This document shows positions 7,290 to 56,312 of a DNA stretch of 64,000 bases, piece after piece (position 1 is the first letter of the stretch; the number at the start of each line of letters is the position of its first letter). A program made the translations under genes and the position numbers. Where the stretch lies: the sequence record NC_049850.1; one strand, given 5' to 3'. The notes below the pieces were generated by a model. It was not told the DNA's origin, searched no databases, and saw nothing but the letters and a program-made list of their open reading frames with translations.

Positions 7290-7742
7290 TTACTTGATGC
7301 CGAGGATTCGGCGGTCTTCGGCACTCAGGCCGTCCAGCAGTTCTTTACGACGGACCGCGTCACGCTTCTGCGCGTCACGCTGTTCTTCCAGATACGCCAT
7401 CGACCGGTCGAAAACCTCGAACTCCCAGTCTTCGGATGCCACGTTGATGAACTCCGTGGTTTCTTCGGTGTGGCTGAAGTTGCCTTGAACGTCAAGGCAT
7501 ACCATCGGGAATTCAATGTCGAAGCCCGGATACAGAAGCGTTGCGCCGTACGCGAACGGATTCTTGATCGCGAATCGCACGTCGAAGCCGAGTGCGGCAG
7601 CGCGTACCATGGCCGCCCATACGCGTGTCTCGTTGGCCTTCAACTTCTCTTCACGCTCACGCTGGGCTGCATCCACCATAGCCTGCGTTTCGGCCTTGGT
7701 GCGCATGCTGCGGGCGCGCGGGGTCACTTTCTTAGTTGCCAT
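7290..7742 (-). CDS. hypothetical protein
   Basis: 150-aa ORF with AAGGAG RBS. Confidence 0.8.
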   Translation of the reverse strand: MATKKVTPRARSMRTKAETQAMVDAAQREREEKLKANETRVWAAMVRAAALGFDVRFAIKNPFAYGATLLYPGFDIEFPMVCLDVQGNFSHTEETTEFINVASEDWEFEVFDRSMAYLEEQRDAQKRDAVRRKELLDGLSAEDRRILGIK

Positions 7743-22418: not shown

Positions 22419-22619
22419 TTACTGCTCGACTGATTCGTACTTCACGAGAAAGGCGCGAGTCACACGCGAGCGATATGCTTGACCGCCAGTGCGTTGCGCC
22501 GCTTTCTCTGCCGCACCCATGGTCTTGAAGACCGCGAGGTATCCGTCGACACACAGGTGGGGCTTTCCGGACGAGGGGAGGATGTGAATGCCCTCACCGC
22601 GCTTTAGGCCCCCGCGCAT
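22419..22619 (-). CDS. hypothetical protein
   Basis: 66 aa, coupled. Confidence 0.65.
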   Translation of the reverse strand: MRGGLKRGEGIHILPSSGKPHLCVDGYLAVFKTMGAAEKAAQRTGGQAYRSRVTRAFLVKYESVEQ

Positions 22620-23002
22620 CAGGCGCTCAGGTCAAGGCCGCGTGCCTTGAAGAAGTCGTGGATGATCTTCGTGCCCTCGACCGCTTGCTTGTAGCCTTCT
22701 GCGGCCAATGCCTCGTTGCGGCCCGGCAGCGCGTCGTCCATCTTGCGGAAGCCGAGACGCAGGAGCGTCAGGCCCTCGGCCCAGTCGCGGATGACCGGGA
22801 AACCTGCGGCGGTTGCCGCGTCTTGTTCTTTCTGGTTGTACGGCTGAACGTTCATCTTGATTCCTTGTTGAAGGGCGCAGAGTTTGGCCCAAAAGTCGGG
22901 GTCGGGTGCCGGGTCTGGCTTCGGCGTTCCGTCCTCGTTAAAACAGTAGAAGCCGCCTTCGCAACCTAGTGCGAGACAGCCTCCGGGTTTGCAATCTTTC
23001 AC
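22619..23002 (-). CDS. hypothetical protein
   Basis: GTG start overlapping the upstream TGA; GAGG RBS. Confidence 0.65.
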   Translation of the reverse strand: MKDCKPGGCLALGCEGGFYCFNEDGTPKPDPAPDPDFWAKLCALQQGIKMNVQPYNQKEQDAATAAGFPVIRDWAEGLTLLRLGFRKMDDALPGRNEALAAEGYKQAVEGTKIIHDFFKARGLDLSA

Positions 23003-28860: not shown

Positions 28861-29841
28861 TTAACAGAAGCCCCAGTTACGCAGTTGCAGACTGCGACCG
28901 GAGAAAGCGGACGCGAAATCGTCCAGTTCAGACTCACGCATGATCCAGTACCACGAGGCACCAGCGTGCGGCATGGGACGCGAGGTCACGGTCGCGTAGC
29001 GCTGTTTCGTTTCCTTGCGGATTCGCTTGAGCACTCCATCGACAGTGAGGTTCGATTTCGGGTTGATGCTGATCAGAACCTGATCGCGCAGCACCACGTA
29101 GCCACCCAGACTGTCGAACTTGAACCCCCGGGCACGCAGTATCCGGTCGTCCATGATCGTAGCCGGAACGGGCACCACGGAAGTGCGGCCCATAGTGAAC
29201 GCGTGATCCGGATTGCACTTGGGCAATGAGTCACGTGCCCCCGTGACCGAGTTTATCACGTCCCCCAGATTGGAGGCAAATACAGGGTCTTTCAACTCGG
29301 ACTCGGACAGGCGATCACCCGGGCCGTCATAGCGGTCACCGGATAGCAGCAGACTCTGTTCTTGCAGACGGGCAACCGACGCGCGGTACAGGTCTTCGAG
29401 CAGAGAACGCCATTTGCTGATGGCGGACAAATCGACAGAACTCTCGTTCAATTCGCCAAGGTAGGCAATTTCGCGAAGGCTTGTCAATTCGTTCTTGACT
29501 GCGCGCAGCGCGACGCTGGTGCCCTGCGGCAGGCCACGTGCACGGAACTCGCGTACGGCCTTCAGCGCGTCGGTCAGGCGCTTCATCTGGCGCTCCTTGC
29601 TGACGGAGCCCATGCCCGGCAGTCGTCGGAACGCAGTATTCGAATCGTCGAGCAGTGCTCGGATGTCGTCCACTCGTTTTTGCAGCCCGTCGATGATCTG
29701 GCGGGGCTCCTTACCGTTCTTCGATCCGAGTTGCAGCATCGGTATCAGCTTACCAAGCTGAGACTGGTTCTTCGCAGTCAGGCCGTTGCGCGCCTGCATG
29801 CGGTCGAACGTCGAATCGACGACGCGCTGATTGTTTTCCAT
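28861..29841 (-). CDS. hypothetical protein
   Basis: 326-aa ORF. Confidence 0.8.
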   Translation of the reverse strand: MENNQRVVDSTFDRMQARNGLTAKNQSQLGKLIPMLQLGSKNGKEPRQIIDGLQKRVDDIRALLDDSNTAFRRLPGMGSVSKERQMKRLTDALKAVREFRARGLPQGTSVALRAVKNELTSLREIAYLGELNESSVDLSAISKWRSLLEDLYRASVARLQEQSLLLSGDRYDGPGDRLSESELKDPVFASNLGDVINSVTGARDSLPKCNPDHAFTMGRTSVVPVPATIMDDRILRARGFKFDSLGGYVVLRDQVLISINPKSNLTVDGVLKRIRKETKQRYATVTSRPMPHAGASWYWIMRESELDDFASAFSGRSLQLRNWGFC

Positions 29842-29951: not shown

Positions 29952-30419
29952 TTACAGCAGGTCGTACGTTTCGCCCTTCGTTGCTGCGGCCTTCGGAGCC
30001 TTCGCTGCCTTTGCCGGTGCTGCCTTCGGTGCAGCGGCCTTCGGTGCAGCGGCCTTCTTCGCTGCCTTCGGTGCCTTTGCCGGAGCGGCGGCCTTCGCTG
30101 CCTTTGCCGGAGCGGCTGCGACCTTGCGCTTCGATGCCGGAACGTCGGCGTCCGATGCCTTCGCCTTCTTCGCGACCGGAGCGGCCTTCGCTGCCTTTGC
30201 CGGTGCTGCCTTCTTGGCGGCCGGTGCAGCCTTCGTCTTTGCTGCTGCGGCCACGGCCGTCAGCTTCGCGACTTGTGCTTCCAGCTTGGCGATCTGCTTG
30301 GCTTGCGCGCCGATGGTCTTCTCCGATGCTGCTGCGCCCTTTGCTGCGTCCTTCAGGATTGCCGAGACTGCCGGTGCTGCTGCGACCTTCGTTGCTGCTG
30401 CCTTTGCGATACGTGCCAT
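29952..30419 (-). CDS. histone H1-like Ala/Lys/Pro-rich DNA-binding protein
   Basis: AKAAK/PKAAK repeats, short coiled coil; ends GETYDLL. Confidence 0.8.
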   Translation of the reverse strand: MARIAKAAATKVAAAPAVSAILKDAAKGAAASEKTIGAQAKQIAKLEAQVAKLTAVAAAAKTKAAPAAKKAAPAKAAKAAPVAKKAKASDADVPASKRKVAAAPAKAAKAAAPAKAPKAAKKAAAPKAAAPKAAPAKAAKAPKAAATKGETYDLL

Positions 30420-30584
30420 GATTGTACTTCCTTCTAACGAGTTGATGAGGTTTTGAAGAGGTGCCGAATTCGTTTCGACTACACTCTCTTTACTACAGGT
30501 TGAAATTGCGTTTTGTGCAATCCCGAAAAGAGAGCGTAGTATCTCACACTTCCGGGAAGCACACAACAATTATTTCAACTTTCT

Positions 30585-31988
30585 TTACAGGGCGTTGCTG
30601 AAAAGCGACACCTTGTCCGACTGCTTGAAACTGCGCTTCGCGCTCTTGGCCACGTCGACTGCCGAGCGGGCCAGTGCTACCACCGGCTCCGAGTTCGGGA
30701 TCGTCGGGATCACGACTGCGATAGCGGTGCTGCCGCCTACCTTGATGAACGACTGCTCGCCCACCTTGAACGGTTGCAGCAGACCCAGTTCCGAGAAGCG
30801 AACCTTGCCAGCGCTTTCCAGCGCCTCTTCGTGAACGTCAAGCGTCGTGCCGTCGAAGAAGTTGACCCGGACGATCCCTTCGGCCACGCGTGTCACCACT
30901 TGGCCGAGGCCCTGCACCGAGTGGCGGACGGCGGCACCGAGTGCGAAGCCGGTTTCCGGATAACGCGGGTTCGTCAGGTTCAGGCCCATCGGGTCCAGAA
31001 TCTGGGTTCCCGTGTTCTGGATCACGGCATCGTCCGTCTCGCTGATACCGCCCACGATCACCAGAACGTCGCCGACAGTATCGCCCGGGTACGTGGCGAA
31101 CAGCGCCTTCGAGATAGCGCCACCGACCTTACCGTCCTTCGTCTCGACGTGATCACCGATCAGGAAGCCGTAGCGTGCTGCGAGAACGTCTTCGGCACTC
31201 CATTCGGTTCCACGGCTGGTCTGCTGGAGCGACAGCGGCTTGATCAGTGCTTCCGGGGGCACCCCCTCGATCTCGACACCCTTCGACAGGACGCGGGCCT
31301 GAGCAGCCGTGTACGGATTGCCTTCGAGGCCGACCGGAGTGCCCGCGTCTTGTGCCAGCGTCACGCCCTGAGCCGTGATAGCCGCCACGTAGAACAGGCC
31401 GACAGCATCCTGAACGCCCTTGCCGATGGCGGCGGTCGACGCGCGGTCGACGAGAACCAGATCGTCGAGAGCGATTCCCAGCTTTTCGAGGCGCTTTTCG
31501 ACACGGCGCAGGGCCTTTGCGTCGGAATTCAGGCTGTCAGCCGTTGCATCGGCCTCGATTGCGAGGAAGTACGGGAGTGCTTCCTTGTTGTCGACGATTG
31601 CGTACAGCTTGTCACGCTTGACGAATGCGAGAACACGCGCGCCGTCGATCTTCTGGCCCGGCTTGAAGCCGCGCTCGATTGCGTCTGCCTCGGCGGCCCG
31701 CAGATCGATGTTTGCCGCCTTGATCTCTTCTTCGCTCAGCTTGGTAAGGCGACCGAAGTCGTCATCCGTCGACACGATCAGTTGAACCGAGAGGTCCGTG
31801 TAGTCAGCGATGATCACGTTCGTGGTTCCAGCCTTCTTGTCGTTCAGGACTTCGAGGACGAGGACCGGAACCGCGCCGAGCGTGACGCCGTTACCGTCTG
31901 CGTGATACCGGGCCGACACCAGACCATGGACCGTACCGACCGTGATACCGTACTGCTCTTGAACCTTCTTTTCAAACTTCTTCGACAT
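30585..31988 (-). CDS. hypothetical protein (467 aa)
   Basis: Long ORF with GGAG RBS. Confidence 0.85.
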   Translation of the reverse strand: MSKKFEKKVQEQYGITVGTVHGLVSARYHADGNGVTLGAVPVLVLEVLNDKKAGTTNVIIADYTDLSVQLIVSTDDDFGRLTKLSEEEIKAANIDLRAAEADAIERGFKPGQKIDGARVLAFVKRDKLYAIVDNKEALPYFLAIEADATADSLNSDAKALRRVEKRLEKLGIALDDLVLVDRASTAAIGKGVQDAVGLFYVAAITAQGVTLAQDAGTPVGLEGNPYTAAQARVLSKGVEIEGVPPEALIKPLSLQQTSRGTEWSAEDVLAARYGFLIGDHVETKDGKVGGAISKALFATYPGDTVGDVLVIVGGISETDDAVIQNTGTQILDPMGLNLTNPRYPETGFALGAAVRHSVQGLGQVVTRVAEGIVRVNFFDGTTLDVHEEALESAGKVRFSELGLLQPFKVGEQSFIKVGGSTAIAVVIPTIPNSEPVVALARSAVDVAKSAKRSFKQSDKVSLFSNAL

Positions 31989-32070
31989 GCTTCTGTTTCT
32001 CCGTTTCGGATTAAAGCCAGATGTTTGGATCGGGTATCTGGCACATCCCGTTTGCAACAGCGAGGATTGA

Positions 32071-32099
32071 ACTATATCAAGCACAATCCTCACCGTCAA
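32071..32099 (-). promoter_or_regulatory. sigma70-like promoter
   Basis: TTGACG-N17-TATAGT. Confidence 0.75.
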
Positions 32100-32106
32100 C
32101 TCCTTT

Positions 32107-33624
32107 TTACACAACTTTGAACTTTTGCGACGCCTTTGCAGATTCGTACGCGCGGTCCTTCTCGATTGCGGGGATCAGGCTCTCCAGATCGGCCAGAATC
32201 TTGCCCTTCGGCTTCTTCTGCCACGAGCCGAGTTGCTTCAGGTGCGCCTGCTGCTCCTTCAGCTTGATCTTCATCTGCTCTTGATCCATGCGCGACCACC
32301 GACGCGTCGGCAGATCGAGAAGCTGCTTGGCCTGTTCAGCCGTCACCTTCATCAACTTGACGAGCATCGCGTCCGGGTCTTTCGCTTTAAGGGCCTTCAT
32401 CAGCGAATCGACGTGATCGACAGCGTAGATCAAGAGTTCCGTGTACGCAATAGCGGCCTCTTGCTTCTTGATCCGGTACGCCAACGATTTCAGTTCGAGT
32501 TCGGTGCGCAATTCGAGCCACTTCTTCAGCAACTCAGGAATCGAGAGCGATAGGAAGTGGGTTTCGAAGTCGATCTTGCCATCGTTCTCGATGACTTCGC
32601 GCAGCGTCACGTTGATCTTGAACGAACGGTTCTGAAGCGTGGCCTTTCGTACCTTCTCGACGAATTTGTCAAACTGCGCGTAGTTGTACGCGGGTTTGCA
32701 CTCGATGGAGTAGGTGGTGCTCCCCTTCGAGTTGTAGCAGCGCTGCGTCTCCGGGAACGTGCGTACCTTCTGCACGAACTTCTCGACGTTGGTGCCCGGG
32801 GGCCAATCACTGATCGTGATCCGCTTGTTATCGCGGTCGATATCGAGCAGAGATTCGAACTGCACCTTACCCTTGCTCGTCTCGAACATGGAGAGCCAAC
32901 CCTTCTGGTTCTCCTTGGTCTTGACGAGTTGGCCACCGTACTTGTGCGAGTACTTCAGCGTCTTCGCGTAGTCACGCGCCGTCAGGTCTTCACCCTTCAG
33001 CATCCGTTGCAGGATCGCTACCACGGATTCCGGTGTGAACGTCGGCAGGTGCGTCGTGATGCCGACGCCGATACCCTCACCGCCGTTCAGCAACACGTTC
33101 GGAAGCTGGGCCGGAAGCGTCACCGGCTCGATCTCCGAATCATCGAAGTTCGGGACGAACGTCGTCACGTCCTTGTGGATGTAGTCCGGTTGCATGAACG
33201 ACAGCCCGTACTGGCTCATGCGTGTGTTCGTGTATCGCGCGGCTGCTGCACCGTCGACCATCGAACCCCAGTTGCCGTCACCCAGCATTGTCGGGCTGCT
33301 CTGGTTCACGAGCGTGACCAGTGCATCGTATGCCGCGCCGTCACCGTGCGGGTGGTACTTACCGATCACGTCACCAACGAGGCGCGCCGATTTGATGAAA
33401 CGCTTCTCCTGATGGGATGCAGCCCACAGGATACGGCGGTGCACTGGTTTCAGGCCGTCGAACAGGTCGGGAACCGAACGGTCGAGGTTCACGGTCACGC
33501 CGTAGACCTTCATGTTGCGGTTGCCGAAATCGCGCAGCGTCTCGTGGCCGAGGTTGCGGTCTTCACCGGGGGCCCGGGCCGAAGCCCCCTTCTTCGTCTT
33601 CAACGTATCCTTCTTCGTTGCCAT
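32107..33624 (-). CDS. gyrA: type IIA DNA topoisomerase, GyrA/ParC-like subunit without a pinwheel CTD
   Basis: DGLKPVHRRIL, YHPHGD, GNWGS...AAARYT (catalytic Tyr), NGGEGIGVG. Confidence 0.93.
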   Translation of the reverse strand: MATKKDTLKTKKGASARAPGEDRNLGHETLRDFGNRNMKVYGVTVNLDRSVPDLFDGLKPVHRRILWAASHQEKRFIKSARLVGDVIGKYHPHGDGAAYDALVTLVNQSSPTMLGDGNWGSMVDGAAAARYTNTRMSQYGLSFMQPDYIHKDVTTFVPNFDDSEIEPVTLPAQLPNVLLNGGEGIGVGITTHLPTFTPESVVAILQRMLKGEDLTARDYAKTLKYSHKYGGQLVKTKENQKGWLSMFETSKGKVQFESLLDIDRDNKRITISDWPPGTNVEKFVQKVRTFPETQRCYNSKGSTTYSIECKPAYNYAQFDKFVEKVRKATLQNRSFKINVTLREVIENDGKIDFETHFLSLSIPELLKKWLELRTELELKSLAYRIKKQEAAIAYTELLIYAVDHVDSLMKALKAKDPDAMLVKLMKVTAEQAKQLLDLPTRRWSRMDQEQMKIKLKEQQAHLKQLGSWQKKPKGKILADLESLIPAIEKDRAYESAKASQKFKVV

Positions 33625-36203
33625 TACTTCGCCTTCTTCGATGCGACCTTCTTAGCCGCAGGTTTAGCCGTTGCTGCTTCCTTCTTTACTGCAACCTTCT
33701 TGACAGCAGGTTTGGCCGGAGCCTCGTCTTCGTCGGCCGCGCTGTCGCTCGGGAGACCCAGCATCTGGCGTCGGTAGTCCACGTCGTCGGCCATCAGCTT
33801 CACGAAGTCCACGTGATCAGCGTCACCTAGCGGCTTGATCTTGATCATGTGTCGCGTGTCCGGGTCCATGATGAGAGTCCGAATCAGACCTTCGTTCATT
33901 TCCCCGTAGCCCTTGACGTGGCGCACGTCCACGTTCTTGATGCCCTTGGCGGCCAGCTTGCGCTGCACTTCACCGAGCGTCGCGCCCACGAACAACTCGC
34001 CCTTCGCCTCAGCGTAGAACTCTGGTGCGTTTGCCACGTACACCATGCCGCGCTCGAACAGGCCGGGCAAGAACTTGTACATCAGCGCCAGAAGCAGGCT
34101 GTTGATGTGACAGTTCGCGCTCATGATGCCGGAAGGAAGCATGAAGTGGTGATACTTCGGGACCGTCAGGCAGTACACAGGCACCGGCTCCGCTTGCTCC
34201 TGCACACGCAGTTTCGAGACGGCCACGAAACCAAGGCCCGTGCTCTTGTCCTGCTTGTTCCAGTCGCGCTTGTCCAGCTTGTCGTTGTACGGGTAGTACA
34301 GGCGGTCACCGATACGCATGTCGCGCGCACGGCAGAACGCGAGGTCCGCGTTGCCCGGGAACGGGAGCAGTTCGCGGCCACGGTTGGCTTGCGTCCGGAT
34401 CACCACGAATTTGTGGTCTTCGCTAACGCGGTACTTCGTGCCATGTGCCTCGATTGCCACCAGCTTCGTGACGTTGCGAACCAGCGATGCCGTGGCCGGT
34501 GCCCAGATTTCGCGGCCGTGGTGGAAGACCGGGACCTCGAAGCCGTTCGGGTTGCGCGACAGCGACTCGATGCTCACCTGATGCGGTTCGGCACCAAGAT
34601 CACCGTCATCCTGACGACGTACAGTGATCATGGTTTCCCCGACGAACGGGCCGTCCGGGTCCGGGTCGGCCAGACAGATGATCTTGCCGACTTGCAGCTT
34701 GGTCATCGGGTCTGCGGCGTTCACGTCATATCCAATCGCGGCCAGAATGTTCAGAATTTCTTCTGATTCGAGAGCCTTTTCCGGTTGGCGCAAGGCGTTC
34801 AAAACCTTCCCACGCAGCGGCAGAATCGCCTGATACGGGAAGCGCGCTTCCCGCACCTTACCGGCCGCAGAATCCCCTTCCAGCAGGAACAGTTCGCGAT
34901 GCTCGACCTTGGTCTTCAGGTCGTACGACGCGTACTTGGCAGGCAGGCCCTGACGCTTGATCTTGTTCAGGTCCGTAGCCGCCTTTTTAGACATCACGAA
35001 CTTGGTCTTGAGTTCGGAGACTCGCGACGCACGATCCGCGATGCGTTGTGCCAGCGCCTTGTTCCCGTTGAAGAACTTGGTCGCGGCCGCCACGAGCATG
35101 GCCTCGAAGGGCTCACCCGCCCGGTCGTCTGCAAGCTTCGCCTTGTCCTGCGACGTGAACGTTGCCTTCGACAGGTACATGTTGACGAGGCCGACCATGC
35201 CATCCTTCAGATCGGGCTCGCGGAACGCGGGGACTTCCTTGGGCTTGCCGTCGACCTTGATCTTCTTGGTCTTGATCCACGGCTTGAGTGCAGTGTACAG
35301 CGCACCAGACACAGCATCGACGTGCTTACCGCCGCTCGATTGGTGCAGGCCGTTCGTGTAGCCCTTGACCTGATAGCCTTCTGCGTTCGTGAACGCGACG
35401 ATCACGTCCGCCAGCGCCGACTTGTATTCGAACATGTCGCGCTCGCCTTCGCACTTCAGTTCGGTCAGCGTCTTTTCGATGTACTCGACAGGGCCGCGCT
35501 TGCTGAAGAACTCCTTCATGCCCTTCGCGTTGCCGATGGCGACGCGGAAGCCCGGCGTCAGATAGGCTGCGAGTTCAGCCCATTGCGTCGCGACCGATGA
35601 CGGGAACGACTTGGCGCTGAACACCTTGTAGTTCGGGAGAACCTTGATCAGCGTGCCCTTCTCAGCCTTAGTGCCGTCCCACTTCTTGGGGGCGGACTTC
35701 AGCTTCGTGACTTCGGTAGCCAGATGGCCGTTCTTGAACGCGATGTAGTACCACGAACCTTCGAAGAAAGTCCACACTTCCATCGAATCGGACAGCGCGT
35801 TCGTGGCCTTGACGCCTACGCCGTGCGTGCCGCGCGAGGCCGCGTATGCGGCATCCGCCTCGAACTTGCCGGACGTGTGCAGTTCCCCGAAGATGGCCTG
35901 CATCGTCGGCGTCTTGATGGTGGTCTTCTTGCCGTTGATCACCATGCTGTGCGTCTTGATACCCTGCGGGATACCGTTCGCATCGTCGGACACCCAGAAG
36001 GTGCCGTTGTCCGCAAACAGCGTGACGCTCGTGCCACGGCCCGCCAAATGCTCGTCGATTGCGTTGTCCAGCATTTCCCGGACGATGACCCAGAGCGCCG
36101 AGGCATCGGTGCCCCCGATGTACATGCCGGGATTCGCGATGATGTTGTCGGGGAACCGAAGTGTTGTGATGTCAGTACTGTCGTACTTCTTCTTAGTTGC
36201 CAT
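33624..36203 (-). CDS. gyrB: type IIA DNA topoisomerase, GyrB/ParE-like subunit with an intein
   Basis: PGMYIG, EMLDNAIDE, ELHTSGKF, GTHGVGVKATNALS, EGDSA, PLRGKVLN, DPDPDG|intein|CHI, KGYGEMN. Confidence 0.95.
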   Translation of the reverse strand: MATKKKYDSTDITTLRFPDNIIANPGMYIGGTDASALWVIVREMLDNAIDEHLAGRGTSVTLFADNGTFWVSDDANGIPQGIKTHSMVINGKKTTIKTPTMQAIFGELHTSGKFEADAAYAASRGTHGVGVKATNALSDSMEVWTFFEGSWYYIAFKNGHLATEVTKLKSAPKKWDGTKAEKGTLIKVLPNYKVFSAKSFPSSVATQWAELAAYLTPGFRVAIGNAKGMKEFFSKRGPVEYIEKTLTELKCEGERDMFEYKSALADVIVAFTNAEGYQVKGYTNGLHQSSGGKHVDAVSGALYTALKPWIKTKKIKVDGKPKEVPAFREPDLKDGMVGLVNMYLSKATFTSQDKAKLADDRAGEPFEAMLVAAATKFFNGNKALAQRIADRASRVSELKTKFVMSKKAATDLNKIKRQGLPAKYASYDLKTKVEHRELFLLEGDSAAGKVREARFPYQAILPLRGKVLNALRQPEKALESEEILNILAAIGYDVNAADPMTKLQVGKIICLADPDPDGPFVGETMITVRRQDDGDLGAEPHQVSIESLSRNPNGFEVPVFHHGREIWAPATASLVRNVTKLVAIEAHGTKYRVSEDHKFVVIRTQANRGRELLPFPGNADLAFCRARDMRIGDRLYYPYNDKLDKRDWNKQDKSTGLGFVAVSKLRVQEQAEPVPVYCLTVPKYHHFMLPSGIMSANCHINSLLLALMYKFLPGLFERGMVYVANAPEFYAEAKGELFVGATLGEVQRKLAAKGIKNVDVRHVKGYGEMNEGLIRTLIMDPDTRHMIKIKPLGDADHVDFVKLMADDVDYRRQMLGLPSDSAADEDEAPAKPAVKKVAVKKEAATAKPAAKKVASKKAK
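34113..34649 (-). mobile_element. mini-intein (179 aa), class-3-like
   Basis: Starts PFVGET after DPDPDG; block B SEDHKF; block F VYCLTV; ends GIMSAN before +1 Cys; too short for an endonuclease domain. Confidence 0.85.
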
Positions 36204-37101
36204 TGTCAAAAATCTCCAGCTTCAGAAGGTTCAGCACTGCGCGGATATCCTTTTCATAATTCATGGGTTCGACCACGAAGGTTGAGTTTTCGACACGGGA
36301 CCTCAACTGCTTGAGGCTCATGTCGGATGAGTTGCCCTTAGCGCAATTAGCGCGGGCGTCAAGAACGCGAAGGTTCTCGGGATGGCAGATAAGAGCCAGC
36401 GGCACCGGCTCTTTACGACGAAGCCGACCGCCGTCGTCCAACATGCGCCAGTATCCGTTGTACACGGAAAATATGTGGTCGATATGATCATAGGCACCAC
36501 GCTTTTTGTCAAGCTGCGTGCGTTCAGCAACCAGACGCGTGAAAAGCTTGATAGCTGCACGGTACTGCGTGTAGCTCATGGCGCTCACGTCCATGCCAAG
36601 GTACTTGTTCCACGTGATGTATGACAGTTCCGAACGGATGTAGCTGCTATGCGTGCGTTCGGTCTTTCGAACAACACGGCGTCGCTTGTCCTTGGCATAG
36701 CCAAGTTCCTCCGTGAAGAACTGAACCACGGCCTCTATGTTCAGGCCAAGAAACTTAGCCAGCACATAGGTGCCGATGTCGTATTGATCATGGGCTTTCT
36801 TCAAGGCTTTAGCGTTCTTGCGCATGTACTCAAGCTGCTCTTCAAAGCGGCCGTAATGCGAGCGCGTATCGATCCCGTACGCCTTCATCTTCGCCTGCAC
36901 CAGCGAGTGACCAACGCCCAACGCTTCCGCGATCTCGCGAAGGGTCAATTGCTGCTTGCAATACAGATCACGGAGGTGCGCTTCCGTGATCTGGCGGCCC
37001 CACCGACCGTTCTTCGACTTCTCGTACACAACACCTTGGACCGAAACGCAGTCCCCAACCTTCCCATCGCTGTTAAGCGGAATCGTCTTCATCTTTTTCA
37101 T
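36193..37101 (-). mobile_element. free-standing HNH homing endonuclease with HTH DNA-binding repeats
   Basis: LTLREIAEALGVG HTH; HIDHIFS...HPENLRVL...NCAKG; lower GC. Confidence 0.8.
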
Positions 37102-37117
37102 AGCAATCCAATGTACA

Positions 37118-37258
37118 TTACCGGGTTGCTATAAAATTGGTGTTCTCCGGATGGCGATTCCAGCGGTTTTTAATGGGAAAAGCAGCAAGTTCAGGAAAGC
37201 GCAGGGTGTTGATATCTGCGCTATCGTATTTCTTGGACTGCTTCTTCACTTCAGCCAT
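37118..37258 (-). pseudogene. vestigial 5' end of gyrB (46-aa ORF; not in the ORF track)
   Basis: MAEVKKQSKKYDSADINTLRFPE matches the gyrB start MATKKKYDSTDITTLRFPD. Confidence 0.75.
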
Positions 37259-37259
37259 T

Positions 37260-38051
37260 TCAGGCGTCTACCTCGAAGTTATTGGGGTTGAACTGCGGTA
37301 CACGCATCAGTTGGCAAATGGCGGGAAGCACATTCGACACTTCTGCGTATCGAGCACGCGTCGAGAGCGTGGGAACGAATTCACCGCCCTGCTTGACGGC
37401 CACGTTCACGTGCACGTAGCCGTGCTCGTGCTCGAATTTCGGGTCCTGCCCCGGACGTGCGGGCAGCGTGCGGGAACGCTCGTTGAAATTGTCCAGCTTG
37501 AAGGTGATACGCAGACCCCCAAGCGTGAGTGCCGCAACCTCTTGATCCGATTCCGGTTTCTCGTTGAGCCCGATGACCGGAATCTTGGCCGGATCATGCC
37601 AGTACGTGACCTTGACCAGAGCCTTATTGCGTGCTTCCGCGTACTCGAAAGTCATGCGGTAGCCCCAGCGATCAAAGAAGTCGAGCAGCGCGTCGTGCAT
37701 GCGGTCGACCGATGCACGGGCCTTCGTGAACGCCGGGTCCTTCATCGAGACCTCGAACTCCATGTCGCGACTCCGGATCGTGCAGTCGCACGTATCGGCC
37801 TTCTTCTTCCACGTCGTTCCAACCTTTTCGAGGAACGGTTCGAGGATTTCAGTTCGGAACGAGAAGCCCACACCGCGAATGCCGTGAGGGTCCGTCACGA
37901 GCTTGATCGTGGGGAGGAAGTCCTCATGAAAGATAGTGAGCGGTATGCCGACCGCAGCCAGTACCTTGTACGATTCCGAATCTGCCGGAATCAACCACTG
38001 TTTGTTCTGGGCCAATCTGATTGTGATCGGCTCACCGTTCTCTACTGTCAC
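37260..38051 (-). CDS. hypothetical protein
   Basis: 263 aa. Confidence 0.8.
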   Translation of the reverse strand: MTVENGEPITIRLAQNKQWLIPADSESYKVLAAVGIPLTIFHEDFLPTIKLVTDPHGIRGVGFSFRTEILEPFLEKVGTTWKKKADTCDCTIRSRDMEFEVSMKDPAFTKARASVDRMHDALLDFFDRWGYRMTFEYAEARNKALVKVTYWHDPAKIPVIGLNEKPESDQEVAALTLGGLRITFKLDNFNERSRTLPARPGQDPKFEHEHGYVHVNVAVKQGGEFVPTLSTRARYAEVSNVLPAICQLMRVPQFNPNNFEVDA

Positions 38052-38359
38052 GCGGAAACCTCCTGTCGGGATTCTAGGGCAAAGTAAAAGCGCTCGCGGA
38101 ACGCTTCGTCCTCTTGAGCAACTAGGGCCAGAATTTTGGCCTCGGCCTGAGCGTCACGCGCATCGCGCGCAGCTAGTACCTGTCTCGCCATTCTATTCGC
38201 TTTACCAACGATTGTAAAGCGAATTTCACGTGCTGGACAATCTTCGTTGCCTTTGGAGAAGTGACAAGTCGAGTACGCTTTTGCCTCAGATGGGTCAAGA
38301 TGCTTGCATGTTTTGCACTTGCGCGAATACAGTTGAAGGTATTCCAGTCTCTGTTCCAT
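38048..38359 (-). CDS. hypothetical protein with Cys cluster
   Basis: CKTCKH...C...C; AAGG RBS. Confidence 0.7.
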   Translation of the reverse strand: MEQRLEYLQLYSRKCKTCKHLDPSEAKAYSTCHFSKGNEDCPAREIRFTIVGKANRMARQVLAARDARDAQAEAKILALVAQEDEAFRERFYFALESRQEVSA

Positions 38360-38447
38360 TTTGGTCCTTAAACGGAAAATGGGTGGAGGGAACTAAATCC
38401 CACCACCCGATCCTAGATCGGGTTACCCCGATCAGACGAACCGCCGA

Positions 38448-39275
38448 TTAGAACAGTTCTTCGTCTTCTTCGTCTTCGTCGTCTTCCGACTCGCCGTCGT
38501 CCTCGTCCTCGTCTTCTTCGTCGTCTTCGTCGTCGTCTTCGTCGTCACCATCTTCGGTGTCGTCGTCTTCGTCGTCTTCCGACTCGCCGTCGTCCTCGTC
38601 GTCCTCGTCTTCTTCCTCGACGACCTTCTTGCCCTTGGCCGGGGCCTTCTTGCCTTTCTTCGGGGCCGGTTCGTCGTCTTCTTCCTCGTCGTCCTCGTCG
38701 TCCTCGTCTTCTTCCTCGTCTTCGTCTTCATCGACGACCGGAGCAGCCTTGCCCTTGCCCTTGGCCGGGGCCGTGGCCTTCTTGCCCTTTGCAGGTGCCG
38801 GGGCCGCTTCTTCGTCGTCTTCGTCTTCTTCCTCGTCGTCACCTTCCGGTTCGACCGGGGCCGCTACCGGTGCCGGGGCCGCGAGGCCGCCAGCGACCGA
38901 CGACGATACGAATTCCGGACGCAGTGCGATCAGCGGGCCTGCTGCCGTCTTGTAGATCGTGACGCCGCGATCTTCGTTGTAGTCCATGCCTTCGACGTTG
39001 CCGACGAATTCCATGGTCTCGTAGAAAATCGTGGTGCCGAGGCATGCGATGACCGACGCACGCGGAATCACGAGACCGCCTTCAGCGTAGTACGCTGCGC
39101 TGTCCGGCTTCTTCGAGGCCACTGCCTTGTTCGTGACGCGAACGAAGACTTGACCCTGCGGTGCTGCTGCTTCGACTGCCAGCTTTTGGGCCTTTGCCTT
39201 CACTTCTGCGCCCTTTGCCTTCGTTGCTGCTGCCTTCGTGGTCTTTGCCGGTGCTGCCTTTGCTGCCTTTGCCAT
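38448..39275 (-). CDS. low-complexity protein: Ala/Lys N-terminus, folded core, alternating Asp/Glu and Lys blocks (nucleolin-like)
   Basis: PAKGKK repeats between D/E tracts; ends EELF. Confidence 0.85.
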   Translation of the reverse strand: MAKAAKAAPAKTTKAAATKAKGAEVKAKAQKLAVEAAAPQGQVFVRVTNKAVASKKPDSAAYYAEGGLVIPRASVIACLGTTIFYETMEFVGNVEGMDYNEDRGVTIYKTAAGPLIALRPEFVSSSVAGGLAAPAPVAAPVEPEGDDEEEDEDDEEAAPAPAKGKKATAPAKGKGKAAPVVDEDEDEEEDEDDEDDEEEDDEPAPKKGKKAPAKGKKVVEEEDEDDEDDGESEDDEDDDTEDGDDEDDDEDDEEDEDEDDGESEDDEDEEDEELF

Positions 39276-39474
39276 GCTCTGTTTCCTTTCGGGTTGAATT
39301 ATCGCGGCTTCACGTGATAGCCGCAATCTTGATACAACGTATTTACTACAACTTCCGAATCAGGGCTGGTGATACGACACTGATCAGCAGTGCCGCATCG
39401 CGAATCCCAATCTATCCTGCGGATTTAGCGGGGAGCGGACTCTACACTAAATCGGTGTTCCGTGTCAACGACTT

Positions 39475-40122
39475 TTATTCGTCGTCGGTGTCGACCGCAC
39501 GGCCACGGCGCAGCTTCGGGGGAGCCTGCACGTTCTTGAACGCTGCGGGCAGGAAGCGGGACGCACGCTTGAACATGCGGGTCACCGGATCGAATTTCGT
39601 GAGTTCGACCGATTTCACGAGGCCGGACTTCATCGTCACTTCTTGGAAGACCTGCGCAACGCGCGCCGTGATCGTGCCGTCTGCCGACTTCTTTGCGGCG
39701 CGAATCACGACCTTGAAGGTCTTGTCGGCCGGGAGGCGCATGCTGCCCTTGATGCCTTCGGCACGCTCGCTTGCCTTGCCCGGGAACTTCTTGTCGTTCG
39801 TAGGCTTGAACGTGACGGCCGAGAGTCGCGACTGAATGCCGATGACGGTCGGCATGTCGTACGACGCCATGTTGCGCTTCTTCTTGGCTTCCGCGTCCGG
39901 GTTGTAGCGGCCGATGTAGCGAGTTGCCACGATCTCGGAACCGAGCAGGCCGTCTGCTTCGGTCTTTACCACGACCTCCACGTAGTGGGGCGTGAAGTCT
40001 GCGGGGACGGGGAATGTGGGGAGCGGAGTGCGGGCCGGTCGAGTGCCGCCCGTGCCTTCAGCGACTTTCGTCGCACGCGTCGCCTGCGCTTTCGCCAGCG
40101 ACTTCTTCTTCGTTGTTGCCAT
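39475..40122 (-). CDS. basic hypothetical protein
   Basis: 215 aa, AAGGA RBS, K/R-rich. Confidence 0.8.
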   Translation of the reverse strand: MATTKKKSLAKAQATRATKVAEGTGGTRPARTPLPTFPVPADFTPHYVEVVVKTEADGLLGSEIVATRYIGRYNPDAEAKKKRNMASYDMPTVIGIQSRLSAVTFKPTNDKKFPGKASERAEGIKGSMRLPADKTFKVVIRAAKKSADGTITARVAQVFQEVTMKSGLVKSVELTKFDPVTRMFKRASRFLPAAFKNVQAPPKLRRGRAVDTDDE

Positions 40123-40804
40123 TGATCCTTCCTTTACGGATGTGGTTGAGTTCAGCTTGAAGCGTGACCACTAGTTCAGCAAGACGCCGAGACGCAAGGC
40201 TTTTCGCAACATCGCGTTTGCCTTGTTGAAGTAGTCGAGCGATAGCGAATTCCGGCGTAGCCTGCAATATCGAGGTCGATACCACAGGACGCTGAATTTC
40301 TTGCTCGGCCCATTCGATGCCGGGGCCCTGCATCCATGTCAAATCGTGCCCATGCTCCAGCATGAGCCGTGTTTCGAGCAGGAATGTGAGATCACGCAGC
40401 AGATACGCTGTCTTTACTAGCTGGAACAACTCTGCGTCCCCGCCGTGGTCCGGATGAACTAGGGTCCGGACTTTTCGATACGCATCTGCAACCAGTTCCG
40501 TCTCTGCGTTGTACAGTTGTTCGGTGCCGAAACTGATGTACCCGGCTGCGGTTACGGGTTCGTGCGCCTCACGCACGGGCATACCGCGAGTCGCAAGCCT
40601 GATTTCGCGTCGGAGCCGCACGACAGTATCGTGACGCTCGTCTTCTTCATACAGGCTATTTACGGCGCGGAGAACAGAGGCGTGGAGGCGGTAGTAACGC
40701 TCGCGCGCAACCTTGATCTGTGCGCGCAGCGCGTGGAATCGAGCAATAGCAGCTATGTCGATTTTGTTCGGGATCGCGAGCGCGGTCCCCGTGGATTTTT
40801 CCAT
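40058..40804 (-). CDS. J-domain (DnaJ-like) protein
   Basis: AYRKVRTLVHPDHGGDAELFQLVKTAY with HPD motif. Confidence 0.8.
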   Translation of the reverse strand: MEKSTGTALAIPNKIDIAAIARFHALRAQIKVARERYYRLHASVLRAVNSLYEEDERHDTVVRLRREIRLATRGMPVREAHEPVTAAGYISFGTEQLYNAETELVADAYRKVRTLVHPDHGGDAELFQLVKTAYLLRDLTFLLETRLMLEHGHDLTWMQGPGIEWAEQEIQRPVVSTSILQATPEFAIARLLQQGKRDVAKSLASRRLAELVVTLQAELNHIRKGRINGNNEEEVAGESAGDACDESR

Positions 40805-55961: not shown

Positions 55962-56312
55962 TTGGAAACTACTTACGACTACAGCCTTACGTTCGACCTG
56001 ACTGACATCATCGTGTTCGTTCTGATCGCGATCATGATCAAGATGGTCATCGACATCGTGCGTGAGCGCATGCGAATACGCAGGCTCCGACGCGACATGG
56101 AGGCAAACGGCAATCTTCCGTGCATCACAATCTCGGGCAACGACGATGTGTCGATCTCGGGTCTTGTGTACGAAGGGCGGCCAATCCCCTCGGTCGATAT
56201 CAAGAACAAAGCGCTGTTCGTCGACGGTCAGTTCAAGCGCCGCCTCGCCCGCAATAGCCGTGTCTACAACCGTGGCATCGGCATCTTCGCGGACGGCAAG
56301 TACATGGGGTAA
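55962..56312 (+). CDS. membrane-anchored hypothetical protein
   Basis: AGGAGG RBS, TTG start, one TM helix. Confidence 0.7.
   Translation: METTYDYSLTFDLTDIIVFVLIAIMIKMVIDIVRERMRIRRLRRDMEANGNLPCITISGNDDVSISGLVYEGRPIPSVDIKNKALFVDGQFKRRLARNSRVYNRGIGIFADGKYMG

Follow-up and report, generated by a model that had tools for sequence, protein, structure and literature searches.

A putative set of DNA-organising polyelectrolyte proteins encoded beside topoisomerase II in the Burkholderia jumbo phage BcepSaruman

Nucleus-forming jumbo phages have changed the view of phage cell biology. Among proteins of strongly biased charge, the basic tail of histone H1 pairs with the acidic tail of HMGB1 (a second case for comparison here), and the known tails of phage single-stranded DNA-binding proteins (SSBs) include the terminal Phe of T7 gp2.5 and the acidic domain of T4 gp32. 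Bacterial proteins with H1-like tails, or with a zipper followed by such a tail, include Chlamydia Hc1/Hc2, Pseudomonas AlgP and the phasin PhaF, and the HMGA-like domain of CarD combines an acidic stretch with AT-hooks and can be replaced by an H1-like tail. Topoisomerase II is known both as a T4-type two-subunit phage enzyme and as a eukaryotic enzyme with a Lys-rich disordered C-terminal domain. H1 and prothymosin-alpha form an ultra-tight, high-affinity disordered polyelectrolyte complex (PMC7661507), Escherichia coli SSB phase-separates through its tail (PMC7584906), the repeats of Hc2 have been described (PMC2848022), and so has a jumbo-phage clade of topoisomerase II (PMC7824862). Here we analyse a 64,000-nucleotide stretch of the Burkholderia jumbo phage BcepSaruman (NC_049850.1; hereafter the window), in which a histone-H1-like polycation, gp167, and an acidic block protein, gp174, are encoded beside the two subunits of a topoisomerase II, and we compare both proteins with gp241, a protein encoded elsewhere in the same genome.

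BcepSaruman (MK552140, 263,735 bp) belongs to the genus Sarumanvirus, and window coordinates, used throughout unless the record is named, equal the coordinates of the MK552140 record minus 62,000. All genes of the region lie on the minus strand, and all are labelled hypothetical in GenBank with the exception of the two topoisomerase subunits. A preprint of 2026 that deals with the related phage Matilda has the group adjoining Ralstonia phage phiRSL1 and standing far from the nucleus-forming phiKZ-like phages; the phiMatilda paper also provides transcriptome (PRJEB113199) and proteome (PXD070006) data for this relative of BcepSaruman. We found no published description of the module reported below: the jumbo-phage survey by Iyer names BcepSaruman for its RNA ligases alone and discusses the topoisomerase clade, and the words "histone" and "condensate" are both missing from a 2026 review of jumbo phages. 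The reading that we favour, at slightly less than even confidence, is that the region may encode a DNA-organising polyelectrolyte protein set of the replication phase in RSL1/Saruman-type jumbo phages. The proteins that carry this reading are the following:

29952..30419, minus strand: gp167, histone-H1-like polycation of 155 residues (45% Ala, 20% Lys, 8% Pro), isoelectric point 10.6, net charge +26
38448..39275, minus strand: gp174, acidic block protein of 275 residues, 93 of them Asp or Glu, isoelectric point 4.05, net charge -63, ending EELF
39156..39275, minus strand: gp174 residues 1-40, Lys/Ala-rich basic arm, net charge +8, of varying length across the family
38895..39155, minus strand: gp174 residues 41-127, conserved all-beta core of near-neutral charge
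38451..38894, minus strand: gp174 residues 128-275, polyacidic tail with a net charge per residue of -0.47, ending EELF
Record MK552140 141584-143122, outside the window (L012:1585-3123:+), plus strand: gp241, SSB, annotated as hypothetical, beside a RecA-like gene

The original prediction, made from the letters of the window, had described gp167 as an H1-like protein and gp174 as an acidic protein with Asp/Glu tracts, PAKGKK-type blocks and an EELF end, and all of these features were seen at the positions given above. That such compositions are rare in this phage was indicated by a simple filter for extreme polyelectrolytes, applied to the six-frame open reading frames (ORFs) of at least 70 residues across the whole 263.7-kb genome, which passed 5 of 1259 ORFs, three of them being gp167, gp174 and gp241. 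The other two lie at record positions 22429-22836 (minus strand, 135 residues, 28% Asp+Glu) and 56080-56295 (minus strand, 71 residues, 18% Lys).

Seven lineages were compared: Saruman itself; phiRSL1; L007, a 190-kb IMG/VR contig; L009/L010, a close relative (JGI 3300076518; NCBI GCA_031787875.2); and L011, L013 and L014, which are more distant metagenomic phages. In BcepSaruman, gp167 consists of a short N-terminal amphipathic zipper, a Lys/Ala/Pro tail of about 100 residues and the tip ETYDLL. The family keeps a short heptad-patterned N-terminal helix in all seven lineages and, at the C-terminus, a D-x-F/Y-L-L-type tip (ETYDLL, DNGYLL, DDDFLL, GDDFLI, DDGFLL, TFDLDI and QDEFNW). With chain lengths of 126-155 residues, and despite Lys contents of 17-39% and Ala contents of 18-45%, the net charge stays between +25 and +31; one relative has GRP repeats. 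This constancy of charge suggests that selection acts on charge and on the terminal docking motif and not on the repeat sequence. The tip resembles the clamp-binding C-termini of T4, a likeness that we keep as a lead only, because neither a beta-clamp nor a gp45-type clamp was detected in the BcepSaruman genome. As in H1/H5, gp167 has a long, disordered basic tail rich in Lys, Ala and Pro. Kinship with H1 did not hold up: the Pfam scan found no Linker_histone winged-helix domain and returned only a sub-threshold hit to BLOC1_2, the Pfam and NCBIfam profiles of bacterial H1-like proteins of the Hc1/Hc2 type gave no match, and no homology to H1 or Hc1/Hc2 families appeared in Pfam, PHROG or NCBIfam. 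A tblastn comparison of gp167 with phages returned no hits, owing to the low-complexity filter.

A profile of the gp174 core, whose motif is GG-x-x-IPR-x-x-V-x-A-x-x-G-x-T-I-Y-Y, found 26 relatives among 1.84 billion representatives, and these share a design of variable basic arm, core of about 87 residues and long acidic tail. The tail of gp174 itself contains three basic blocks of the PAKGKK/PAPKKGKK type, and its charges are strongly segregated (z=10.7; 0 of 500 shuffles reached the observed value). Many relatives carry PAPKKKGKKVVEE or AT-hook-like RGRPPK blocks in their tails, and the R-G-R-P AT-hook core, which is not in gp174, occurs in P0033, P0034, P0041, P0045-47 and P0055. The acidic-aromatic C-tip, which had been proposed as a mark of SSB interaction hubs, proved to be conserved: an acidic tail with an aromatic residue among the last six positions was present in 20 of the 20 full-length family members, so that gp174 resembles SSB-type proteins in having an acidic C-terminal tail with an acidic-aromatic tip (EELF). 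The proposed likeness to nucleolin and nucleoplasmin stood in part. Long acidic tracts do alternate with basic stretches in gp174, and homology was not found in Pfam, PHROG, NCBIfam or fold searches; more specifically, Pfam gave no nucleoplasmin domain and no nucleolin RRM or GAR domain, and the model of the core matched no pentameric beta-sandwich of the nucleoplasmin type.

That AlphaFold2 model, built from the family alignment, has a predicted local distance difference test score (pLDDT) of 88.4 and is all beta, with two very long strands. Foldseek returned no PDB match for it at an E-value of 0.001 or better, and the best hits of an exhaustive VIA search, SH3/Sm/Tudor-like barrels with a Z of at most 4.7, fell under the noise level stated for the tool. 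A word search with the core gave no match. From its near-neutral charge, we infer that the modelled core is more likely to mediate docking or oligomerisation than to bind DNA. In phiRSL1, the gp174 homologue is represented by ORF328 and ORF329, between which the reading frame shifts by +1 directly behind the VIKVT codons (L004 5950-6060; phiRSL1 AB366653.2, about 219966-220076), and the joined reading aligns with gp174; the split reflects a true frameshift or a mistake in the sequencing of the record.

A pointer to the process in which gp174 might act comes from gp241, which was found by a composition screen of the neighbouring 128 kb. Against PHROG 15004 ("single strand DNA binding protein"), the whole protein scored E=1e-82 and its N-terminal 270 residues E=4e-59, and by these profile matches gp241 is evidently the true SSB of the phage. 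The Pfam models miss it: none of the SSB, gp32 or Enc34/gp2.5-like families was found in the BcepSaruman genome, and the SSB domain of gp241 matched nothing among PDB sequences. The C-terminal 240 residues of gp241 consist of Asp/Glu tracts alternating with PAPKKGKK blocks (charge segregation z=18.6; 0 of 500 shuffles reached the observed value), and in RSL1, Sauron and the L007 phage the homologous SSBs end in a tail of the same block type. The tails of gp174 and gp241 are 71-75% identical in nucleotides over 300-410 nt and have an identical 23-residue peptide in common; their best score is 199 bits, against 85-142 bits for cross-phage comparisons and at most 71 bits for codon-shuffled controls. 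The cores are unrelated (hhalign of the gp174 core against the gp241 SSB domain, probability 0.2). On this similarity we regard the gp174 tail as the same module as the tail of the SSB, which ties the set to DNA replication and recombination.

A second line of evidence is a promoter-like motif. An AGTAAA motif had been noticed ahead of both the H1-like and the acidic gene, and its full form, TGTAGTAAA, was confirmed at both:

30489..30497, minus strand: TGTAGTAAA site, 70 nt upstream of the gp167 start
39342..39350, minus strand: TGTAGTAAA site, 67 nt upstream of the gp174 start

When at most a single mismatch is tolerated, the window contains 14 copies of TGTAGTAAA, where 4.0 would be expected; 0 of 100 shuffles reached 14, and all 14 sites are on the strand of the neighbouring genes; those leading directly into a gene start lie roughly 20-100 nt upstream of it. 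Exact copies of GTAGTAAA between 62 and 190 kb of the record number twelve, eleven of which stand ahead of genes and the twelfth inside a minus-strand gene. The motif precedes the cytidyltransferase gene, gp152, gp167, gp174, gp185/186, gp189 and the tRNA region, as well as the GroES-like gp211, gp213, the RecA-like gp242 and gp252, the sole gene of the structural module in the list. It reads as a putative phage promoter used mainly for non-structural genes, mostly those of replication and metabolism.

The charged proteins form a conserved syntenic module beside topoisomerase II in all seven lineages. The order putative J-domain protein, gp175, gp174, gp173, gp172, GyrB, GyrA, H1-like gp167 and gp166 recurs in six further lineages, namely phiRSL1, one IMG/VR contig and four metagenomic or genomic lineages. 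The remaining features of the region are:

28861..29841, minus strand: gp166, directly following the H1-like gene in every lineage seen, ending WGF, 21 homologues
30585..31988, minus strand: gp168, orphan of 467 residues between GyrA and gp167, found only in L009/L010
32107..33624, minus strand: gp169, GyrA-like subunit of 505 residues, Pfam DNA_topoisoIV (E=6.5e-77, residues 49-471)
33624..36203, minus strand: gp170, GyrB-like subunit, Pfam DNA_gyraseB, Toprim, HATPase_c and DNA_gyraseB_C, with a weak Intein_splicing hit
33627-33734, minus strand: last 36 residues of GyrB, a DEDE acidic patch followed by a Lys/Ala/Pro tail
36193..37101, minus strand: gp171, HNH/HTH homing-endonuclease-like, upstream of gyrB and overlapping its start, PHROG HNH endonuclease (E=9e-8)
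37260..38051, minus strand: gp172, 263 residues, conserved, between the acidic protein gene and gyrB
38048..38359, minus strand: gp173, 103 residues, conserved, four Cys (CxxC ... C ... C, zinc-ribbon-like) and a helical C-terminal half
39475..40122, minus strand: gp175, basic N-terminal tail, conserved alpha/beta core, basic-then-acidic C-terminus
40058..40804, minus strand: gp176, putative J-domain protein (HPD motif), directly upstream of gp175, conserved in most lineages

The scans of Pfam, PHROG and NCBIfam assigned no family to gp166, gp167, gp168 or gp172-175. The best-conserved marker of the module is gp175, with 31 homologues and with members in phages BCSR5, Motura and RSL1. Its AlphaFold2 model from the family alignment (pLDDT 84) is an alpha/beta platform for which Foldseek found no PDB match at an E-value of 0.001 or better, an exhaustive VIA search gave a best Z of 5.7, under the noise level stated for the tool, and BFVD returned the gp175 family alone. 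Profiles of gp175 and of the gp174 core matched nothing, or just acidic low-complexity segments, among PDB sequences, and the ESM Atlas held a poor model of gp175 and none of gp174. For gp176, the Pfam DnaJ score is 16 bits, below the cut-off of 27.8, and that of the L007 homologue is 29.0 bits, above it; the same region was matched by Pfam DnaJ in five of six gp176 homologues. Homologues of gp172 hold the same position in RSL1, L007, L009 and L011, and L013 and L014 have ORFs of matching size there. Two genes stand outside the module. The orphan gp168 is not at the corresponding position in L007, L013 or L014, and its limitation to L009/L010 places it outside the conserved core. A mobile passenger, gp171 is not in L009, has a homologue in L007 and is represented in RSL1 by a different HNH gene. 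In the phage of L009/L010, which has the same module, gp175 is 74% identical to that of Saruman; about 558 contigs of this phage, including one NCBI genome assembly, occur in 722 index blocks, and its spread across sequencing data appears to be very wide.

The domain content of gp170 (ATPase, transducer and Toprim) and of gp169 (breakage-reunion) is that of a phage two-subunit type IIA topoisomerase. According to Pfam, the GyrA-like subunit consists of the breakage-reunion domain alone, with no C-terminal DNA-wrapping domain, and has a modest basic N-terminus. The acidic patch and H1-like tail that had been reported at the end of the GyrB-like subunit were both seen, and the Lys tail occurs in four of the seven lineages (Saruman, L009, RSL1 and L011). 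The basic MATKK-type starts that had also been pointed out are present on GyrA (MATKKD), GyrB (MATKKK) and gp175 (MATTKKK), but on the two topoisomerase subunits they are trivial, too short to matter; in GyrB, the start is no DNA-binding tail, because it forms a five-residue cap before the conserved YDS-x-x-I strap. A MAT(T)KK start was found in 4 of the 176 annotated proteins examined, the fourth being gp120 (7290-7742, minus strand, 150 residues). Lys-rich N-termini were also seen on the RuvC-like resolvase gp245 (MAKKKVKK) and the 5'-3' exonuclease gp286 (MKKGKKGK). Within gyrB, a mini-intein at about 34110-34650 (minus strand) interrupts the Toprim DxDxDG motif; its first residue is Pro, not Cys or Ser, and it has a Cys at a block-F-like position. 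RSL1 has the same insertion, the gyrB of L009 is of similar length (854 residues), L007 and L011 have none, and L011 carries an intein in gyrA instead.

If these proteins act together, they would concentrate or organise replicating and recombining phage DNA with the SSB and topoisomerase II, possibly in a coacervate-like phase. The original prediction, that the proteins co-condense phage DNA into a replication compartment, is supported in part: the charged set, its motif and the conserved tips stand, and condensation itself stays hypothetical. In such a scheme, gp167 probably dimerises through its zipper, and its H1-like tail may coat and bridge double-stranded DNA, while the core of gp174 probably serves oligomerisation or docking. 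Oppositely charged disordered regions could bind each other and DNA electrostatically, and the tails of gp174 and SSB may buffer or displace the gp167 polycation in competition with DNA, by analogy with prothymosin-alpha/H1 and HMGB1/linker histone. The acidic-aromatic tips might dock on folded partners, as SSB tips do. The Lys tail of GyrB and the separate H1-like protein could help a topoisomerase that lacks a wrapping domain to hold DNA, and the adjacent putative J-domain protein may bring host DnaK to remodel the assembly.

Several observations weigh against the reading of a DNA-organising set. The binding of its members to DNA or to each other is read from sequence features, and expression in the replication phase is deduced from the promoter-like motif. 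Disordered tails of high charge can have other roles, for instance in autoinhibition or in solubility, and need form no condensate. For neither folded core, that of gp174 or that of gp175, was there a match among known DNA-binding folds, and that of gp174 lacks a basic character. Conservation of the charged parts is also uneven: the GyrB tail is absent in three of the seven lineages (L007, L013 and L014), the gp174 homologue of RSL1 has no basic blocks and, in the record, a frameshift divides it, and the excess similarity of tails within one phage is clear in Saruman alone and was not seen in the L007 phage. Public sequencing runs showed small word shares, most of the contigs being unrelated repeats that code for Asp and Glu; the few contigs from RNA libraries that match the gp174 core exactly give just a hint of transcription, since such libraries can contain DNA.

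A more ambitious reading starts from the RSL1/Saruman-type phages being without a protein-shelled nucleus. In these phages, complex coacervation of gp167 as a zipper-dimerised polycation, gp174 as an oligomeric polyampholyte and the SSB with its block-charged tail of the same kind would build a membrane-less and shell-less compartment for replication and recombination, an idea that we regard as doubtful. Its further parts, in which Lys tails and tip motifs would draw in topoisomerase II and the J-domain protein would bring host DnaK to remodel the compartment, are likewise improbable in our estimate.

Among the alternatives, the proteins may be functionally unrelated and alike in composition alone, with no higher-order assembly, which we consider unlikely. 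On this account, the topoisomerase would use gp167 as a DNA-capture subunit acting in trans, and the tails of gp174 and SSB would be autoinhibitory or solubilising bristles. The constant position of the H1-like gene just downstream of gyrA, the lack of a C-terminal domain in GyrA and the restriction of the GyrB Lys tail to some lineages, as if it were interchangeable with a separate subunit, all fit the first part, and the autoinhibition of DNA binding by the acidic tails of T4 gp32 and T7 gp2.5 fits the second. However, tails of 150-240 residues with strongly segregated charge blocks go far beyond what autoinhibition needs, the aromatic tip conserved in the gp167 and gp174 families implies docking partners, and the whole set, including the J-domain protein, is inherited as one block.

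Somewhat further from the data is the possibility that gp174 is a DNA-mimic decoy for host DNA-binding or defence proteins and that gp167 acts separately, for example in compaction or silencing of the host nucleoid; we find this rather improbable, as we do the choice of targets that goes with it (nucleoid proteins, beta-proteobacterial H1-like proteins, restriction enzymes and other defence nucleases). Small acidic DNA-mimic proteins such as Ocr, Arn and SPO1 Gp46 are well known from phages, and gp174 has a charge of -63, is non-structural, stands behind a promoter-like motif common to replication genes and shows no sign of DNA binding in its folded core. Yet the same tail is found on the phage's own SSB in Saruman, Sauron, phiRSL1 and the L007 phage, which makes it a feature of replication proteins and not of a dedicated decoy. 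A pure mimic would also need neither the basic blocks of the gp174 tail nor the AT-hook-like motifs of its relatives, and the unvarying place of gp174 beside the topoisomerase II and H1-like genes speaks for their acting together.

It is very unlikely that gp167 and gp174 are capsid cargo, the polycation neutralising head DNA and the acidic protein serving as a scaffold-like or ejected internal protein. There are parallels, in that T4 heads contain basic internal proteins and very acidic internal peptides. Jumbo phages, too, carry cargo proteins (10.64898/2026.10.21.760668). However, both genes lie in the replication region by topoisomerase II, and the structural module, inside which the promoter-like motif occurs just once, is a long way off at 145-187 kb of the record. 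The gp174 tail, moreover, is common to SSB. To our knowledge, SSB is not a virion protein in any system. Finally, the idea that gp174 is itself the phage SSB, built like T4 gp32 or T7 gp2.5, is already largely refuted and close to negligible: its basic N-terminal arm, core and acidic tail with terminal Phe (EELF), together with a genome in which Pfam finds no SSB family and the polymerase, gp222, is of the PolA type, had spoken for it, but the clear SSB gp241 by the RecA-like gene and a near-neutral core of about 87 residues with no OB-fold match and no profile similarity to the SSB domain speak against it.

Returning to the reading of a DNA-organising set, the module offers conserved and genetically tractable candidates for the means by which giant phages of other kinds keep 200-300 kb of replicating DNA in order. 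If its members act together, no phage-encoded system of the linker-histone plus acidic-chaperone type would precede it, and polyelectrolyte condensates on DNA would gain a test bed in bacteria; if the compartment proposed above were real, giant phages would have a second, purely electrostatic way to compartmentalise DNA. Even without condensation, a widespread replication machinery would gain a block-charged SSB tail of up to 240 residues and, in the gp174 core and gp175, two new folded domains.

The proteins of this locus resemble known systems part by part. The topoisomerase has the ATPase and Toprim domains fused in the GyrB-like subunit, a GyrA-like subunit without a wrapping domain and a Lys-rich disordered tail, features that it shares with the T4-type or the eukaryotic enzyme; unlike the eukaryotic tail, that of the phage enzyme is on the B subunit, is about 30 residues long and occurs in four of seven lineages. 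With HMGA and CarD, gp174 shares the combination of acidic tracts with short basic blocks, and several of its relatives have RGRP cores, whereas gp174 itself has Lys blocks, no RGRP core and a far longer acidic portion. The repetitive Lys/Ala/Pro tails of bacterial H1-like proteins, which bind DNA non-specifically, resemble that of gp167, and PhaF-type proteins also have the N-terminal helical zipper followed by an H1-like tail; gp167 differs in being phage-encoded, in its acidic-aromatic-Leu tip, in its fixed place beside topoisomerase II and in giving no family match. Like the tail of E. coli SSB, with its linker and DDDIPF tip (PMC7584906), the tails of gp174 and gp241 are acidic, disordered and closed by an acidic-aromatic tip. 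They measure 150-240 residues against 10-60 in known SSB tails and are interrupted by regular Lys blocks, and gp174 is without an OB fold. The pair of H1 and prothymosin-alpha (PMC7661507) differs from gp167 and gp174 in that gp167 has a zipper and no winged-helix globular domain, with no sequence homology, and in that gp174, unlike prothymosin-alpha, has a folded beta core, a basic arm, basic blocks in its tail and an aromatic tip. In both pairs, a disordered Lys/Ala/Pro polycation stands opposite a long disordered Asp/Glu polyanion, and by analogy the interaction of gp167 with gp174 would be expected to be electrostatic, to leave both partners disordered and to compete with DNA.

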